In this document: piece by piece, positions 1 to 11,518 of the stretch
Layout: every line of letters begins with the position of its first letter
Position numbering within the stretch: the first letter of the stretch is position 1
Assembly (NCBI RefSeq): GCF_000143415.4
Contig: NW_003314267.1
Location: 3,393,137 to 3,457,136, forward strand
Direction of reading: 5' to 3'
Length of the DNA stretch: 64,000 bases
From: Selaginella moellendorffii
Taxonomy: Eukaryota > Plantae > Lycopodiophyta
Position numbers and translations under genes: made by a program
Notes under the pieces: model-generated
Databases searched by the model: none
What the model saw: only the letters and a program-made list of their open reading frames with translations
What the model was told of the DNA's origin: nothing

Positions 1-484
1 CGTCCTTGTTGATGATATCGCCGATAAATCCAACTGACGGCCTCACTACGGAATCCAGGAACTCGAAAGGAGTACACCGATGGTTGCTGCGCGAGTAGAA
101 CGTTGCCAAGCCAGCCATATCTTCTGGAAGGTGTCGCTTCAACGTCTCGAGCTTTGGAGTGCTCAGAAACGGTAAGAGAACGCGCAGAGTTCCCCGCACT
201 TCGCTGGAGTTGTCGAGAAAATCCAAGCTCTGCTCGCCTGCAACGCGGTCCAAGTGCGCAGTGAAGAAACGCTTGTGGCAAATGGATGATATGTCGAGAA
301 AACTCTGCGCGTCCCCGAGAAACGCTACATTGTAGAGAAGCCTTCTGTATCCCTGGAGCTTTAGTTGGAGCTTCTCCTGATGGCTATCCAGGACAGTGGC
401 AAGCATCTCGAGCAAGCCGAGGATAACGACCGTTACTCTCGATTGTGTTGAAGAAATCTCGCTGTGCTTGTGCAAACTCCGGAT
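1..484 (-). other. In-frame continuation of the helicase ORF beyond the TGA at 485-487, open to the window edge
   Basis: Manual translation IRSLHKHSEISSTQSRVTVVILGLLEML...FIGDIINKD gives 161 codons with no stop. Confidence 0.7.
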
Positions 485-3400
485 TCAGTCCAGCCCCGAC
501 TCTAGTAGCTGCTCTTCCAAAAACTTCTTCGCGAGTGATGCTACTCGCTCGGTCCTGTGTTGGCCCCTGCTGCATCCACTGTAAAGCGGCCTGACTGTTT
601 CGTTTTGGAGCCAGAAAGCTCCAACATACTCCACAATGCAGAGCTTGGGATTCATGTCTCGGCTGATTCCCAGGTAGTTCAAAGCCGCTGAAACCGCAGT
701 TCCCCGTGGTAACATATCTTGAACTCCATCGAGAGACTGCACCACGGAGTGGATCCATTGAAACCAGGTGTTCCAAGCCGAGAGCACGAGTTGTTGCAAG
801 TTCTCGACGTTGTCCTGGACGAGCGTCAAGCCAGAGCGCTCGGAATCGAGCTCAAACGAGGCTGCTGCTTTCAAGGCTTCGGACGCTCCTCCCAATAGCT
901 GCCGCAAGGCAATGACTTCGACGTTGGAGTTCTTCGCCACCTTCCAGTTTTCTAGGAGCTCTCTCACTGTGGCAGTGCCTGGAGTCGTCCGGAGCACTTT
1001 GAGTTCGTGCGAGAACACGGGGTTGTCAGCAGCTAGACGTGCCGCCTTGTCGAGAGTCTCACGGTCTTGGAAGCTCTTCAGAGGCCAGCCACAGTTCTGT
1101 CCTCCCCACAAGGACTGGAGCCTGATGTGCTCGAGGATTTTCCGAGCCGCTTCGGAACGCTTGCCGGCATTTTCGAGTAGCTCCGATGCTCGGAGAACGT
1201 TTCCCTTCCTCGCAGCCACTTCTGCAGCTTTCTCGAAGTTGCCAAGGCTGCATGCAAGCTCGATAAGCTCGTCAAGGTACTCCCGTCTTTCCAAGAACGC
1301 AATCTTCCAGTCCGCATCCGACGAGGCTTGCACCGCCTCCATCATCGAGTGAGCGTCTACTTTGCGATGAAAGTACTCGGCAGCGTTCTTCCGAAACTTC
1401 TCCAACGTGTTGGCAGGCACGCTTGGTACTGTCCATTTGCGAATGAAGTCGAGGCCTTCTTTGTACAGTCTTCCCTTGGCACAAGCTTCAAGGCATTTCT
1501 CGTAATGGTTCCCCTCCGCATATACTTGTGAAGCTTCGCTGTGGAGATTTGCGGCCATGTAGCAGTCTCCCGAGAGTTCTAGCTTTGAGCATTGCTTGTA
1601 CAAAAAACCTACACAACAAATCAGTATAAGCACGAGAGAGAGGGAGAAAAGAAAAGAGCTTTATTCATCACAGTACCTGCCCTTTGAAAGTCTTTCATCA
1701 ATCTGAAACACTTTGCTACAGCATCCTTCTTTTCCACGGACTCGTACAGTGCGGCCGCACGTTGTAGGTCCCTTTTTGCAGCACTCTGGTCGACTCTAAG
1801 GAATTTTTCTCCCCTCTCTTGAAATTCCGCAGCTTCAGATAGTTTTGCTCGGTATCTATCGCCTGCTCGTTTGAAGGAAAGCTTTGCCATGTCAAACCGG
1901 CGAGCATTAAACATCTACACAAACCAGCCAATACATTTTTTTAAAGAGTGAATCCACTCCACAGATATTTACCTCAACACCACGTTGGTGCCACTGCTCG
2001 GGGGAGCTTATCTGGTGAATCGAGGATATCAGTGACGCATCCAACGCACCTCTCTTGACAACGTTCAGACTCTTCCAGTAATCAAGCATTGGCCGCTGAT
2101 ATTCCAGGTTCTCGTCGATGATCCACAGCCTCCGTTTAGTCCTCGTGATGGCAACATATAGCTCCTTGAGTTCATTGCACAAAATGCTGGGAAGCTGAGC
2201 GGGTAAACAATTAGCTGGACGGCTTCTACCAAAAACAGAAGAAAGTGTTTTCCACGCTTCAGGGCTTGCCGAGTCAGTGAAGAAGTTAAAGATCAATACA
2301 TCCTGTGTAAGAGTAGCTTAGAGCATGTTAGAAGAAAATAAAGCGTACCTCAAACTCTAATCCTTTACTGTCCTCCACCGTAAGGACGAGGCATCTTGTG
2401 CCGAGTTCCTTTAGCAGCTGCTGCTTCTGGGACTTGTTCCGGACTAGTACGGCTTGATCCGAGCCAAACTCGTAACCGGAGCTGGATCCATGACTGAAAA
2501 ACAAAAAGTTGATAGACGTGCTATCGTCTGGGAGATTCAAAACAACTGGAACTTCGCCGAGTACAGAACTACTTTCCGGCTCGAGCCTGTCGACCCTGAG
2601 AGGGAAGAACCGAAGTATCAGCTCCATAACACTATTTGCAACCTGGACAATGGCGCCCGTTGTCCTGAAATTGTCTATCAGCTGCACGATATCCGGACAC
2701 CTCGCCTCGGCTTCCAGAAACTCTGTATAGAAAACCCGACGTACATCTTCGAACCGGAATTCCACACCTCTAGTGATGGTCTGAGCCGTATCTCCAGCAA
2801 AAATGAAGCCTTCCCGATAATTCGTGCATACGAACTTGAGCAGGCAAACCTGAGCCAGCGTAAAATCTTGCACCTCGTCAATATAGACAAGATCAAGCTT
2901 GTCTCCCTTGAACCCCTCCACCCTGAGCTGCCGGTACAAATGCCAAACATAGTCTGCCATGTCGTAGTCGTCGTTTTCTTTCTTGAGTTTCTCGTAGTGG
3001 AGATAGAGGTCGTAGATCGTGTCCCGTTGCCCCTCATCGAACACCGAAATACGCTGTGATGCCAAGTTGATGAAAGCCTCGCGAGAAAGCCTTCCGTCCG
3101 GACAGTGAAGGGACTCAGCGCTTCCCTTGATGTGAGACACGATAGCTGCGTAGACATCTGATGCATCGTACGTCTTCCTCAAAGAGGCCTTCATCATACG
3201 CGGCCAGTAAACCGACACAAAGACGTCGAAGTCCACTTCCCGATCTTCAAGTGTTCTGCTTCGGAAAGGCCTCGACACAGTTCCATGAACCATATCCAAA
3301 AGCTTTTTGAGGGTCAAGACGAGAGGAAAGGCCTCAGGTTGGATGTTGATGAAACTGTCTGGAATGCTGCCTTGAAACTCTTCGTCAAGCATCACATCTT

Positions 3401-6400
3401 CGTTGCAGGTGTCCCCAAAAGCAGCAGTATAAGCATCACTTCGTAGTAAAGACCTGAAATGTAAGAAAAACTGGTGACGCTGATGAGTAACAGGAGTTCG
3501 TCGCATACCTTTTAAACTTTTCGAGGTAGTTCTTGACTGCGAAACACAGCCTCTGGCTAACGGTAATGAACGCTTAACGCAAGCACGTCCCCTCGGCGCT
3601 ATCAAAACTCCCGTTATCACCAAAACCACACCTTGATATGCGATGGAGCTGCTCAATGCGCATCATCTTAACACTGATAACCGTGGTTTTGCCTGTGCCC
3701 GACCTTCCGATAACAAAAGCCGACGAAGAAGACAACATCAGCTCGGTCTGTGGATGACTTAGAGGGAATGGCAGCTCGATTTCTGTACCGCCACTGTCTG
3801 TCAGAACGTAGTTCGCAATTCCAGATGACTCTGAATAGAACTTCAGTAGAGATAGATTCTCTGAAACTTTGGGACCACGCTGACTAATTGGAGGCGCTGC
3901 ATTGCCGTCGTCGATGACTTTCTGGACAACATCTCCGCTCCATACTTCCGGAACAACGATTCTACCGCAAACGGACGTCTTTGTCGTCATAGTTCGACAG
4001 CGTTCCACGTAATCCAATGAGTAAGTCGAGCTGACAGTATTCAATCGTTGGACAGTTCGCTGTAGTCCTTGAACGCCCACCACATCACATAGCTCGATGG
4101 CCTGAGACCTTCTATTGCTCGTCAAAACCACTCTCCAGACTAGAAGCAAACCGTTCATGCGAAACACGTGAATATCCTCTGAGAGTGTCAGCGGCATCGC
4201 AGAGTTAAACTCAGGCCAGTGACCTCTAGCAAGTCCCAGGACAAATCTCGTGCAGCCATTTCTGAAGGACGCCGATTGACGAGCGTAACTGGTCTTGAAC
4301 TCCTTGCTGAAGAAGACCTGCAAAGAGAAAAACATGCTCAGGTAGGCAAGAAAACCGATGAGGACACTCACCTTCCAGATACAGTTTTCGAGAAGAGAAC
4401 TGTTAATCAGGATATCATAAAACTGGTCCACTTTGCCTCCAACACGCTTCTCCAGCTCTGGAACGTCGGTCGAGTCCACAAAGCAATCTCTGCTTTTTGC
4501 ATTCTGAACTAAATCCCTCCAAATGGTCTCGTTCTTAGCCAAGGTATGCTCGTTACCAACAATGCAAAGACAGTATCTGCATGGGAAAAACTAAGTAGAG
4601 GCTCAAACATTATGGCAACCACCTGGCTCGAGTTATTGAAACATTCAGACGTCGATGATCTTTCAGAAAGCCCAAATCTCCGGAAGGGTTCGATCTGACA
4701 GTCGACAAAATAACTACGTCCATTTCACGACCTTGAAATCCGTCGACAGTATTGGCCTCGACCTTGAAAGAAAACGAAGCATGTTGTATGCGACTTCTTA
4801 GTGCAGTAACTTGTGCCTTGTAAAAGGAGATAACTCCCACCTCAAGGTTGCTGCAGTTACGTTTCTCTGGAGAATCACATCTTAGAAATTTCAACCAGCT
4901 TCATTCTGTACCTTTTTGGAGTTTCTCCAATAGAAACATGATGACTTCAATTTCTGTGGGATTTTCCAAGCTCCCCTCTTTGGCAGTGCATTCCGAACTG
5001 TTCGCATGGATAAATATATATGGGCCGTATAAGAGCGAGCGGAACGCTGCGCCGTAAGAACTCACTGTTACATTCGGGCCATCTTGGATTTTTCGCTTGT
5101 AGAATTCATAGTTTGAGAACTGGCAAATAGATGGGTGCATGCGGTACTGAACATTAAGCATAATATTCGGGTGGTCCAGCGCATGGAGCCTCTGGAACAA
5201 GCTCCTTCCATAACCGGACATTTTAGACTTCTGTAAACACATACAGGCATCGAATCAGTACGAAGTTTGCACGGTTAAAAGTACCTCGCTAAGAACAGTG
5301 GGTGGTAACTGCCGGTGGTCTCCAACAAGGACGAGTTGCTTTAGACAAGAAAGGCCCATAATGATAGCTGTTTCCGCTTCGATAGCTTGAGAAGCCTCGT
5401 CAAGAACAGCTACGTCAAAGAGCACCGCCGAATTTTGCACCAACGGCATAGCAGCGCAAGACAGCGTGCAAAACACCATGGTCGAATGCCTGACGAGCTG
5501 CCTTCTGATGAAGCTTGTCATGCGGTCAGCGCTCACTTGAAGGCTCTGAAGGAGGACAGCAAGTTTGTCAAGGTTGTTCTTGATGCTCCTGTTGACACCA
5601 AAGCAAGCAATAGCATCAATAAGATCGCTTATCTTGGCGAGGAGGCTTTTCACTTTGACGATTTTAGCCGACTGAACGAGTGTGGTCGGCAGGTCCGAAA
5701 GAGCCTGAACCATCTGCTGTTCAAGACTGGCGAACGTTCTTCGTACGACGTCCGAGAAGTTTTGAGAGGCCTCCATATTCAGAAAGTCGACCATGGAAGA
5801 CGCTTCTGATTTGCAGCAGCTTAAGGTCGACGATATCCTGTTCAAGCGATATGGAAGAAACACTTCGGACAGCAGCTTGTCACTAACACCAGTCAGCCTC
5901 GTCTCATTTCCTATGAGCAGAATATCGTTGGAGCCAGAGTCGTTTGTCTTCAGAAACCGAGTGACTAGTTCCTGAACGGCCATGTTTGTAGGAGCGCAAA
6001 CCAATACACGCCTTCCAGAGCTCCGTAGAACAGAAAGAAGTGCGGCTAGCACCGACGTTTTCCCTGTACCCGGAGGTCCCTGTATCAGCCTCACGTACGG
6101 CTTTTGATTTTTCTCAAGCGCCAAAACGGTGCTGGACACGGCCCTTGATTGAAAATCGTTCAGATGCGAGCATCTTGTTCCAGAAAGAAATCCTTTGTCA
6201 GCATCATCCACCCAAAGTGCCTATAAACGAAAACATGAAGTTAGCGAAAAATACGTTACTTCAGTGACAGAAAAATTCTCTAGGTACCTGCTGCAGCACC
6301 TCGTCGAAAATCGGGAACCGATTTTCATCGGCAAACAGCGGCCGCTGCAACGCATTCCAAATCCTCGAAGCTGATACCAGGGACTCCAAGCCAATGACGT

Positions 6401-7011
6401 ACCAGGGTCTCTCCGGATCAGTCAGAGCGTTCTCCATCTGGGATGTGGAGTATATCTCGGCCTCCCAAAAGCCCGTTGGAACATCAAAGCCGGTCAGTAG
6501 AACCAGCGCGTGCATCTTTCCCGAAGCTTGCACGTCCTTCGCGGAGGAAGTTGGGCTTGTCGCGAGTAGGACAACATCCATTGGCTTGAAAGAGGAGTTG
6601 TCTTTACCGTCCACCTTGAGCCAGACCCGTCGAAGCGTTTCGTCTGTGTCTTCCATCTTCACTCGTACCATAGCCCAGCCATCTTTTTTAATCCGTGAAA
6701 GCCCGCGGCTTAATCCTTCTCGCACTTCATCGAGCAGCGGCAACTTGAAGCTCGCGAGGTACTGCCTCAAAGAGGTAAACTCGAGAGGAATTTTTCTCAC
6801 CTGAAACACCATCTTCCTTGTCAAGCAAAGTGCAAGCTCAAAGAAAGAAGAGAAAAAAAAAAAAACAACTCACCTGAATGAGCGAGCCATTCTCGATGTT
6901 GTCCAGCGACCACTTGAGCACGCGTGATGAAAGCGTCTCAAACCTCGACGATTCATCGGCGGCAGAAGTGGATGCTTCGATCGATTTCCCAGTCGAAGAT
7001 TGCACCTGCAT
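485..7011 (-). CDS. Multi-exon double SF1 helicase: UPF1/SEN1-like module + UvrD/REP-like module + TPR-like helical region (TRANK1-like architecture)
   Basis: Module 1 motifs: GPPGTGKT, DEASQ, GDHRQLPP, QYRMHP, VDGFQGRE, RRLNVSITRAR. Module 2 motifs: GRSGTGKT, DEVQD, GDTAQ, NFRT, SKGLEF, LYVAITRTK. Ala/Lys/Glu-rich helical repeats follow. Short GT-AG introns join the ORFs; ATG at 7011. Confidence 0.88.
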
Positions 7012-8014: not shown

Positions 8015-9280
8015 ATGGCAGCCACCGTCACTCTTGTTGGCAATGGTTATGTGTACCCAAACGACAGTTTCGGTTCTATTTCTAATGATGGCCTTGAAGG
8101 ATGGACCGATGCCACTGGATCAACCCGTGTCTTCTTTTTGCCACAGAAAACTGGATGGATCTCTGTTTCAATCCAGGCAAGATCAGTTGACAACACTAAC
8201 ACCTTGCGCTTAAGCCTCGATGGTAGTCCCAATGCTGCACACGACGTAGTTTTGCCCATGTCCTCTGATTTCAAAACTTATACAGTGGGAACTTATACCA
8301 TTTTCAGCGCAGAGTATCACTATCTGGAAATACGTGCAGTCACCCAAAACTCAACCTACCTTCCTGAAGTGCAAGCGCTGATCATCTCTGGTTCTGCTGC
8401 CGAAGGCCTCAGGTATAACAAGAGCTCCAATCGCGCTGCACCCTCAACGCATCTCTGGTACAACACAGATGCTATCCAGGGGGCTATCACTGGGTTCTAC
8501 ACTGAATTCTATGTAAAGCAAGCCGAAGATCCCGTAAACTCCTACTACATGACGAATGGTTTTGGAGATGGCTACTTCGGCATTCAGGTAAGTTCCAGTC
8601 TATACCATGGTGACCACTCTCTAATACTGCTATCTATATGTTCCTAGGTGATCTCTCCGACTGAAAGGAGAGTATTGTTTTCAGTATGGAGCAATTATAA
8701 TACTGAAGACCCAGGGCAGATCCCCGATGACTACAAAGTGAAGCTGGTGAAGAAAGGCACTGATGTGATTTCAGGAGAATTTGGTAATGAAGGGTCGGGT
8801 GCACAGAGCTACATCCAATATATGTGGAATACTGACACCGTTTACAGAGGGCTTTTGACGGCTGAAGCGGATGGCAGCGACAACACTATATTTTCAGGTT
8901 ACTTCTTTTTGCCGGAGTCGGGCTGGAAGCTGATAGCTCGATGGAACAAGCCAAAGACTGGAGCTCGCTTGTTGACAGGGCTTTACTCCTTCGTGGAAAA
9001 CTTTCGAAGCAATGGAAACGACTACTTCAGAGCTCACTACGGCAACCAGTGGGCTTATGGTGAGGGTGGATGGGTGCAGCTGACCAAGGCTACATTCGAC
9101 ACGACCGCCGGTGAAGGCGACTATCAGCGATATGATTATGGCGCTGGGGCAGAGGGTAATTGGATGTATATGTTCAGTGGTGGATTTAGGCAGACCAACA
9201 ATGTGAAGGTTGGAGATGTCATAGAAAGGAGCGTTGGTCCTGATCCCGACGTGGACTTCGCAATCTTGGATGCTCTCTAA
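8015..9280 (+). CDS. DUF5077+DUF3472 family protein, copy A (exons 8015-8587 and 8648-9280)
   Basis: Motifs PSTHLWY, YYMTNGFGDGYFGIQV, ERRVLFSVWS, GEFGNEGSGAQSY, SFVENF and GNQW are typical of bacterial DUF3472 proteins. One phase-0 GT-AG intron of 60 nt. Confidence 0.85.
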
Positions 9281-9412
9281 AGCCTACATGCCAGAGCTCA
9301 AAGGCTTTGCTTGGACTGTACCTTTACAAATAACATGGCTGGCGCTAGATGTTTCGATCCATGCCGATCCATCGCACCTATCATAATCTCCTGGCAATCT
9401 ACCTTCAGTTTT

Positions 9413-9670
9413 CTAATGTAATTATATTAATGCAATAATAAGTGGTTCGAACCCCAATTGTATGCTTGCCAGTTGTCGCACACACCGGCGATGGCAAGCT
9501 CCAAGGTACCACAGCCGAGACCAAAGCTGGAAACAAGCAGGCAAACGAAAGAAACTTCGTTTCCCTAAGAACAAATTAGAGTTCTAGACATATATAATCA
9601 CTTTAAATCGCAACAGCAGAGGCTTTCCAACGCTAGAATGAGCGAAGTACCAGCTCGATGGAAAGACAAC
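9413..9670 (+). pseudogene. Heavily deleted duplicate of the tRNA-Leu flank, tRNA T-arm and subtilase 5' exons
   Basis: TAATGTAATTAT matches 11932. GGTTCGAACCCCA matches 12019. CACACCGGCGATGGC...GGAAACAAGCAGGCAA matches 14844-14907. ATGAGCGAAGTACCAGCTCGATGGAAAG matches 15493-15520. Confidence 0.75.
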
Positions 9671-9675
9671 AATCA

Positions 9676-9912
9676 AGACCAGCTATCTTTTTCAATCCGT
9701 GAGAGGCTGCCGAGGTAAAGAGGTAAACTAGAGAGGGATTTTTTTCCAGCTGGAGCACATTGTCATTGTCAAACGAAGTGCAAGCTCAAAAAAAAGAAGA
9801 GAAAAATAGAACTCACTGAAAGAGCGACCCATTCTCAATGAGCACTTGAGCACGTGATGAAAGCGCCAAACCTCGATGAGTCATTGGATGCTTCGATTGT
9901 GCATTTTGCATC
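9676..9912 (-). pseudogene. Heavily deleted duplicate of the helicase gene 5' end
   Basis: Colinear matches to 6671-7017, including AATCCGTGA, AAAGAGGTAAACT, AAGTGCAAGCTCAAA, CACTTGAGCACG, GGATGCTTCGAT and TGCATTTTGCA. Confidence 0.8.
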
Positions 9913-10029
9913 TAATGTAACACAATAAACTGTTTTTGATTTACCTAAGCAAAAGATGGTAGTGAATATATTTAAAATATGCTTGAATATTCAGGATATT
10001 ATACCATCTAATGGTTGTTATTTATTTAG

Positions 10030-10235
10030 ATTAATTTTATATTTATAATTTATAAACTTTTCCCTTTCTAGTATATATTTTTTATTCTATTATCTAATGG
10101 TTGATATGCGATAAAATTAATCTTGTGTTTATAAATTACAAACATGCTTATAATTATAAAATTTATTTGATCAATTAAATTAATAAATAAAAATAACATT
10201 ACTAGCTATGTTTTCTTTAGCAAACAAATTATTAT
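10030..10235. repeat. AT-rich dispersed repeat, copy 2
   Basis: Close match to the reverse complement of 57430-57598 and to 7400-7615. Confidence 0.7.
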
Positions 10236-10255
10236 CTGCGGTGGTGTTTTAGTTT

Positions 10256-11518
10256 TTAGAGAGCATCCAATTTTTTCAGGTCCACATCAGGACCAGCGCT
10301 CCTTTGTATGATATCTCCAGGTTTCACATTGTTCGTCTGCTTAAATCCACCACTATACATATACATCCAAATGCCTTCTGCCCCAGCGCCATAATCATAT
10401 CGCTGATGCTTCTCTTCACTGGCGGTCGTGGTGAATCCGGCCTTGGTCAGCTGCACCCATCCATCCTTACCATAAGCCCACTGGTTGCCAAAGTGAGCCT
10501 TGAAGTAGTCGTTTCCATTGCTTGAAAAGTTCTCCACAAAGGAATAAAGCCCTGTCAACAAGAGAGCTCCAGTCTTTGGTTTGTTCCATCGAGCTATGAG
10601 CTTCCAGCCCGACTCCGGCATATAGAAGTAACCTGAAAATATGGTGTTGTCGCTACCAGAAGCTTCAGCCTTGACAAGGCATCTGTAAACGGTGTCAGTT
10701 TTCCACATATATTTGAAGTAGCTCTGTGCACCCGACCCTTCGTTACCAAATTCTCCTGAAATCACATCACTTCCTTTTTTCACCAGCTTCACTTTGTAGT
10801 CTTCGGGGATCTCCTCTGGTTTCTGAGTATCATAGTTGCTCCATATTGAAAATAATACTCTCCTTTCAGTCGGCGAGTTCACCTATGGATAATAAGAGTA
10901 TTAGGAGGTGGATAATGCAATTAAACTGGAACTTACCTGTATACCAAAGTAGCCACCTCCAAAACCATTCGTCATATAGTAGGAGTGAAGGGGATCTTCG
11001 CCTTGCTTGACATAGATTTCACTGTAGAACCAAGTGATACCCCCCTCGATACCCTCTGTTTTGTACCAAAGATGCGTTGAGGGTGCACCGCGGAAGGAGC
11101 TCTTGTTATACTTGAGGCCTTCGGCGGCAGAACCAGAGATGACCAGTGCTTGCACATCTGGAAGGTAGGTCGAGTTTTTGGTGACTGCCCGTATCTCCAG
11201 ATAGTGATACCCTGAGCTGGAAATGGTGTATGTTCCTACTGCATAAGTTTGGAAATCAGAGGACTTGGGCAGGACTACGTCGTGTGCAGCACTGGCACTA
11301 CCATCGAGACTTAAACGCAAAGTGTTAGTATTACCAACTGATCTTGCCTTGATTGAAACAGAAATCGACCCAGTTTTCTGTGGCCAGAAGTAGACACGGG
11401 TGGATCCAGTGATATCTGTCCATGCTCCAAGCCCGGCTTCAGAAATAGAACCGAAACTATTGGACCCCTCTCTTGGGTACACATAAGCATTGCCAACAAT
11501 TGTGAGGGTGGCTGCCAT
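10256..11518 (-). CDS. DUF5077+DUF3472 family protein, copy B (exons 11518-10937 and 10882-10256)
   Basis: Full-length paralog of 8015-9280 with the same intron position (GIQ|V); intron is 54 nt. Confidence 0.85.

Follow-up and report, generated by a model that had tools for sequence, protein, structure and literature searches.

A predicted RelE/ParE-fold domain between the two helicase motors of a land-plant protein family, with a degenerate copy in Selaginella moellendorffii

To our knowledge, toxins of the RelE/ParE superfamily (RelE, YafQ, YoeB, HigB and ParE, of the BECR class) are regarded as prokaryotic. In Cami1, a CARF-RelE protein (PDB 8phb), the RelE domain is a signal-activated, ribosome-dependent ribonuclease (RNase), and in TrmO the C-terminal domain (PDB 7btu) is a non-nuclease part of a tRNA methyltransferase, neither having a link to a helicase; both active and non-catalytic outcomes are therefore possible for the RelE fold. 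A helicase link has been described for Type II/III-A CoCoNuT systems, whose UPF1-like helicase CnuH has a RelE/colicin-D-like RTL (RNase toxin-like) domain between an SmpB-like OB fold and, C-terminal to it, the helicase core, and is encoded in an operon with McrBC-type CnuB/C and HEPN nucleases; the RTL domain was found by AlphaFold2 (AF2) structure comparison alone, resembles no characterised toxin in sequence and is of uncertain nuclease activity (PMC11090510). Here we analyse a stretch of 64,000 nucleotides (nt) of the Selaginella moellendorffii contig NW_003314267.1 (positions 3,393,137 to 3,457,136 of the forward strand, assembly GCF_000143415.4; hereafter the window, to which all positions refer), in which the gene LOC9634966 (RefSeq protein XP_002966061.2) carries, on the minus strand at 4380-4075, a segment between a UPF1-like and a UvrD-like superfamily 1 (SF1) helicase module. 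We find, with high confidence in the structural models, that about 85 residues of this segment are predicted to form a true domain of the RelE/ParE fold (BECR type), which is followed by a helix α3, a further helix α4 and a β-hairpin.

We found that the AF2 model, built on a 29-sequence alignment, has a core with predicted local distance difference test (pLDDT) values above 90, and that a second AF2 model does likewise. The predicted elements are β1 (residues 7-10), α1 (12-19), α2 (23-37), β2 (56-61), β3 (64-72), β4 (78-87) and α3 (89-103), with an extension composed of α4 (108-115) and a hairpin (118-122 and 125-129). The AF2 models thus contain the β1-α1-α2-β2-β3-β4 succession with a C-terminal helix, its antiparallel sheet lying on two helices, that defines the RelE/ParE fold, and the prediction is close to the pattern of one strand, two helices and three strands that the initial annotation had read from the DNA, to which it adds a further helix. 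That helix, α3, overlays the C-terminal helix of RelE-type toxins, and the structural alignments to the toxins extend into it; across the α3/α4/hairpin region, L99, C114, P130 and W133 are near-invariant in the family alignment. Upon searching the PDB with Foldseek, the top of the list consisted almost wholly of RelE, YafQ, HigB2, ParE and YoeB structures, with 4fxe_E being the best match (probability 1.0, template modelling (TM) score by target 0.73, E = 2.3e-3). The top matches of the VIA search were also almost all from the RelE/ParE superfamily, and the shape search of the ESM Atlas returned ParE_toxin, YafQ_toxin and YoeB_toxin clusters with TM-scores by target of 0.72-0.85, while language-model features gave ParE_like, Toxin_YhaV and ParE_toxin, with weak scores. 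The RelE/ParE fold claimed in the initial annotation, which had named AlphaFold and Foldseek as its check, is therefore borne out by two AF2 models and by the Foldseek, VIA and Atlas searches.

Next, we investigated the distribution of the segment. A full HMMER search with the 176-residue segment against 1.84 billion representatives matched 29 cluster representatives; those with names come from plants, the remainder lie on eukaryote-type contigs, and no recognisable bacterial toxin is among them. Using a region-restricted word search, we obtained 1198 homologous proteins, and the best 120 of these all derive from land plants, including angiosperms, a gymnosperm (Cryptomeria), a fern (Adiantum), a moss (Ceratodon) and the lycophyte Selaginella; the database names of the relatives include 'UvrD-like helicase ATP-binding domain-containing protein', 'TPR and ankyrin repeat-containing protein 1' and 'Lupus brain antigen 1-like'. 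A hidden Markov model (HMM) of the segment matches 154 of the 160 family proteins compared, with E-values down to 1e-74, and XP_002966061.2 matches the family HMM at residues 691-871 (E = 3.1e-53). Mean column identity among 142 aligned members is 49%, with the consensus W.V.FS..F..SF.KL....K..V...LL.L..G(WRPK or EWPK)...K..KV..LY.V.S.DI.K...Y.QVLK.WD.L......L..RL...F..YT..Y..C....G.LEVP..W. The segment is a conserved domain, far from chance, rather than a linker, and it belongs to a pan-land-plant family of giant proteins composed of DUF6469, a UPF1-like SF1 helicase, this middle domain, a UvrD-like SF1 helicase and helical repeats, an order (DUF6469, AAA_11, AAA_12, middle domain, UvrD-helicase, UvrD_C, repeats) that we also find at this locus. 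In many plant genomes several family members lie on one chromosome-scale record, as in Euphorbia peplus, where a single record holds six of the proteins, and in Cryptomeria, where the locus tags of four genes lie close together (SUGI_0684140 to 0684590), a clustering that hints at tandem expansion, as in fast-evolving gene families.

A second subgroup, carrying 'GEWPK' in the consensus loop, was observed on eukaryotic metagenome contigs from ENA and JGI, with the order DUF6469, UPF1-like helicase, RelE-fold domain and UvrD. Its contigs (L002, 5002-13406; L003, 1737-10364; L004) contain long, nearly intron-free open reading frames (ORFs). The host is probably a non-plant eukaryote, and a Duc1 domain in one neighbour hints at a fungus.

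At the level of sequence, neither Pfam, NCBIfam, the PDB nor, one subgroup apart, hhalign provided a significant match between the domain and the RelE/ParE superfamily. Pfam and NCBIfam gave no match for the segment, nor did the PDB when searched by sequence and by profile, and when Pfam was run on the 142 members at E up to 10 it returned no RelE-clan family, only scattered spurious ones (PsbU, Methyltrn_RNA_4 and others). Stand-alone relatives of 76-241 residues were not found in the profile word search, which recovered only exon fragments of the plant family; here the domain sits inside the product of a eukaryotic gene with several exons, unlike a stand-alone toxin of about 90 residues with an antitoxin. 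Upon aligning the family with the E. coli RelE profile by hhalign, a weak test since that profile is narrow (Neff 2.2), all members or the plant members gave insignificant values (P = 0.19-0.31), and the 'GEWPK' subgroup on its own gave P = 0.008 in a structurally correct register, in which its YRL[VI]WSVD aligns with G-YRLVYQV of RelE and thus with the catalytic R61. We consider this alignment suggestive, short of a proof of homology. The initial annotation was to fall if the fold were absent and the profile searches blank; the profiles are indeed blank, the predicted fold is present, and the reading is not refuted.

We then examined the residues on which activity would depend. In E. coli RelE the catalytic and mRNA-contacting residues are K52, K54, R61, R81 and Y87, and YoeB, YafQ and HigB have His/Glu/Tyr sets. 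In the hhalign register, which makes the mapping approximate, K52 corresponds to family column 60 (K or R in plants, R or H in the 'GEWPK' subgroup, R in the Selaginella copy) and R61 to column 65 (Y, R and L, respectively), whereas K54 and R81 stand opposite gaps in the alignment and a clear counterpart of Y87 is missing, so that plants, the 'GEWPK' subgroup and the Selaginella copy have none of these three. The conservation of basic catalytic residues, on which the initial annotation had suggested a check, does not hold, the RelE set being largely absent from the family; in the Selaginella copy the K52 equivalent alone is present, and there is no equivalent of the tyrosine. The family has a signature of its own, in which D71 and Q79 are conserved at 100% both in plants and in the 'GEWPK' subgroup, followed by W84 (99% and 100%, respectively), G39 (99% and 100%), K/R82 (99% and 83%), S/T69 (95% and 100%) and D85 (93% and 75%). 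Of the set G39, D71, Q79, K/R82, W84 and D85, the Selaginella copy keeps G39, Q79 and D85, and its substitutions are D71 to V, K/R82 to E and W84 to C, with S/T69 changed to R in addition. The domain is strongly basic, each of the 142 members having a net positive charge (median +9), with +7 in the Selaginella copy and +7 in E. coli RelE.

Our assessment tilts, if only slightly, towards the RelE-fold domain being a non-catalytic module that would bind RNA or the ribosome, or couple the two motors between which it is wedged, and that is degenerate in this allele. This reading takes up the predicted fold, the family-wide conservation, the basic charge, the position between two SF1 motors and the transcription and splicing of the gene, with the fold and the charge being what points to RNA or ribosome binding. 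The RelE catalytic set would have been lost, or never have been present, in the domain of the plant family, and the C-terminal RelE-like domain of TrmO probably illustrates how the fold can serve without acting as a nuclease. The Selaginella allele, with family invariants replaced and two nonsense codons, would give a truncated product at most.

The nonsense codons emerge from comparison with a sister copy, the other haplotype, on scaffold GL377582.1 (protein XP_002971430.2, 2496 residues), with 97.6% DNA identity over 7.4 kb. The reading frame of the window copy is interrupted by a TAA (3576-3574) and a TGA (487-485); past the TGA it is open to the start of the window (2-484, minus strand), the 3' end of the gene lying beyond it. 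Because the first stop comes just after the UvrD P-loop, the locus can encode at most a truncated protein with the UPF1-like helicase and the RelE-like domain. RefSeq XP_002966061.2 removes 3453-3630 (178 nt) as an intron, thereby skipping the TAA and the AFITVSQRLCFAVK motif, a splice that we did not see in the transcript contigs examined. One of these is spliced at a 55-nt intron (joint 3451/3507, cut +2), at whose junction the sister protein reads ..EKFKR|SLLRS, and then runs unspliced to 3808, and another (X1 record 3) spans 3526-3936 with 0 mismatches, including the TAA. The RefSeq annotation of LOC9634966 thus conceals a nonsense codon behind an intron that the contigs examined do not support.

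These observations bear on the possibility that the locus is a decaying pseudogene allele whose RelE-like segment is a functionless relic here, whatever its role elsewhere, which overlaps with the non-catalytic module at this locus and which we hold to be possible, though doubtful as the whole account. Besides the two stops that the sister copy lacks, a dN/dS ratio of 0.42 between the copies (dS 0.034, 2142 codons), the replacement of residues conserved at 99-100% family-wide and a family HMM score in the lowest tier (173 bits, compared with up to 243) are all in its favour. However, V71, E82, C84 and R69 are common to the intact sister copy, so the divergence of the domain is older than the stops; moreover, the copies differ by no frameshifts and by just two 3-nt indels, transcripts of the gene are still made and are spliced correctly, and the helicase motifs look intact.

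Returning to the non-catalytic module, several points weigh against it. BECR/RelE nucleases can switch active sites and diverge widely, yet stay active (Aravind and Koonin groups; PMC3710099, PMC11090510), so the absence of the E. coli RelE residues is not proof of inactivity. The invariant D71, Q79 and K/R82 on β3-β4 could, judging from the alignment, form an alternative active site in canonical members. An mRNA bearing the TAA is present, which makes a truncated product possible, and the other haplotype is intact.

Such considerations lead to an alternative that we rate as unlikely, namely that canonical members are active endoribonucleases, possibly ribosome-dependent, with an alternative site formed by D71, Q79, K/R82 and basic β2 residues, which the helicases would deliver or license in CnuH-like RNA surveillance or antiviral action, the window copy having decayed. 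Nucleases that act on mRNA in the A site have this fold, basic residues occupy columns 57 and 60 alongside the conserved signature residues, the YRL[VI]W of the 'GEWPK' subgroup matches G-YRLVY of RelE including R61, and a RelE-like domain is borne by a UPF1-like helicase in a predicted bacterial RNA-targeting defence system. Against this stand the lack of any significant sequence or profile tie to a RelE/ParE family, the unmatched K54, R81 and Y87, the tyrosine of land plants at the R61 position, the atypical nature of Asp and Gln as RelE-type catalytic residues, and the state of the Selaginella copy, a nonsense allele in which D71, K82 and W84 are missing. We are more sceptical still of the specific proposal that, in land plants and some other eukaryotes, the helicases license the RelE-like domain of canonical members as an RNase, which might work on the ribosome, with the Selaginella copy belonging to a divergent paralogue and being an allele in decay; if true, the toxin-derived, RNA-targeting defence of bacteria (CoCoNuT CnuH-like) would have a counterpart in eukaryotes, and plants would possess an undescribed effector of RNA surveillance or antiviral defence. 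At the Selaginella locus itself, the ribonuclease effector that the initial annotation had envisaged is unsupported, with the K52 equivalent alone retained, and an active effector is improbable because family-invariant residues are replaced and two nonsense codons are present. The roles of a TPR sensor and of an immune or RNA-surveillance system that it had also put forward are hypothetical. Finally, we judge it very unlikely that the likeness is a fold analogy or a modelling bias, with the segment being an unrelated small α/β module of the helicase family that has a common two-layer arrangement.

Regarding the architecture of the gene (Table 1), translation reproduced exactly the residues quoted in the initial annotation, reading ..NCIWK, 18 in-frame codons and then VFFSKEFKTSYARQSASFRNGCTRFVLGLARGHWPEFNSAMPLTLSEDIHVFRMNGLLLVWRVVLTSNRRSQAIELCDVV. 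The 18 codons constitute a GT..AG intron, in frame and stop-free, that splits WK|VFF, and it is absent from RNA-type contigs of 4 public runs from 3 studies (joint 4315/4370, cut +2); these contigs and the identical junction in XP_002966061.2 confirm the splice that had been proposed. Codons 4377-4372 (W-K), the last two of their exon, open strand β1. With RefSeq XP_002966061.2 or single exons as queries for the spliced protein, Pfam gave a weak DUF6469, AAA_11/AAA_12 at residues 147-637 (AAA_12 at 447-637), UvrD-helicase/UvrD_C at 901-1355 (UvrD-helicase at 901-1151) and helical repeats, with the middle segment sitting between the AAA_12 and UvrD-helicase matches. The introns flanking the AAA_11 exon are spliced out in RNA contigs, in which the joints 4867-4911 and 4577-4622 are also present. 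All ten introns of LOC9634966 seen in transcript contigs within 1500-7000 are tiny (45-73 nt). Run X6 ('organism B') has contigs that diverge by a few percent, indicating that a related accession or species expresses an orthologue. The neighbours of LOC9634966 in the window, at 8015-11518, are a convergent pair of paralogous genes with long ORFs that read like DUF5077/DUF3472-type proteins.

Table 1. Features of LOC9634966 in the window, in the direction of transcription.
Feature	Position	Strand	Evidence or remark
Exon, N-terminal half of UPF1-like helicase (AAA_11, Walker A GPPGTGKT)	5285..6220	-	Pfam AAA_11, E=5.6e-46; XP_002966061.2 residues 129-440
Three exons (5230-4912, 4866-4623, 4576-4372), AAA_12 and tail	4372..5230	-	Pfam AAA_12, E=8e-62, residues 447-637
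54-nt in-frame GT..AG intron interrupting β1	4318..4371	-	Sequence and RNA contigs
Predicted RelE/ParE-fold core, XP_002966061.2 residues 697-776	4078..4317	-	β1 (rest), α1, α2, GHWP loop, β2 IHVFRM, β3 LLLVWRVVL, β4 SQAIELCDVV
Predicted helix α3, then family-specific extension (α4 and β-hairpin)	3940..4077	-	AF2; consensus RL..YT..Y..RC....G.LEVP..W
Acidic linker and conserved 'LMKFYSLSS'-type helix (here LLKFYSESS) leading to UvrD-like module	3790..3939	-	Low-confidence pLDDT 46-64; family alignment
Walker A GRSGTGKT of UvrD-like helicase	3685..3708	-	Translation; weak AAA_19 match; UvrD-helicase match, residues 901-1151
In-frame stop TAA	3574..3576	-	39 codons past last Walker A residue, directly before conserved AFITVSQRLCFAVK motif; sister copy CAA (Gln)
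RNA-supported 55-nt intron	3454..3508	-	RNA-contig joint
Rest of UvrD-like helicase (UvrD-helicase, UvrD_C), with intron 2302-2347	2117..3453	-	Pfam; RNA-contig joint
Second in-frame stop TGA, C-terminal helical-repeat region	485..487	-	Sister copy TGC (Cys)

In the literature searched, we found no description of the middle domain in eukaryotes, be it in plants, in TRANK1 or in DUF6469 proteins, and the Pfam search returned no family for the stretch. A RelE fold between two motors across land plants offers a testable handle on a wholly uncharacterised large protein family, and links that family to a bacterial precedent, in which the UPF1-like helicase of a defence system predicted to target RNA bears a RelE-like domain. 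Should canonical members cleave RNA, plants would have a novel type of effector for RNA surveillance or immunity; should they not, the family would neatly illustrate how a toxin fold can be put to structural or RNA-binding use.

When the plant domain is set beside the RelE/ParE superfamily, it differs in having no significant sequence similarity and in largely missing the catalytic set, as well as in its extra α4 and hairpin and its own D71/Q79/W84 signature; furthermore, RelE/ParE toxins stand alone with an antitoxin, whereas the plant domain is internal to a eukaryotic protein of 1,900-2,900 residues. With animal TRANK1 ('Lupus brain antigen 1'), the names of family members, from which alone this likeness is drawn, point to a UvrD-like helicase and repeats in common, to which the plant proteins add DUF6469 and the UPF1-like motor. 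The fusion of bacterial RelE/ParE domains to UvrD-type helicases, given as established in the initial annotation, found no support in the literature checked, the documented precedent being the RTL domain of CnuH. The Selaginella locus is a eukaryotic monocistronic gene, without a CoCoNuT-type operon (CnuB, CnuC, HEPN), and, unlike the RTL domain, the plant domain follows the UPF1-like motor and precedes a second motor, of UvrD type, in a eukaryotic protein. Like the RTL domain, it was recognised by AF2 structure comparison and not by sequence likeness to characterised toxins. Judged from the published description of CnuH, through which alone it is known here, the two would nevertheless have in common a RelE-like fold and a UPF1-like SF1 helicase in one polypeptide, and the CnuH RTL domain is the closest published analogue of the plant domain.

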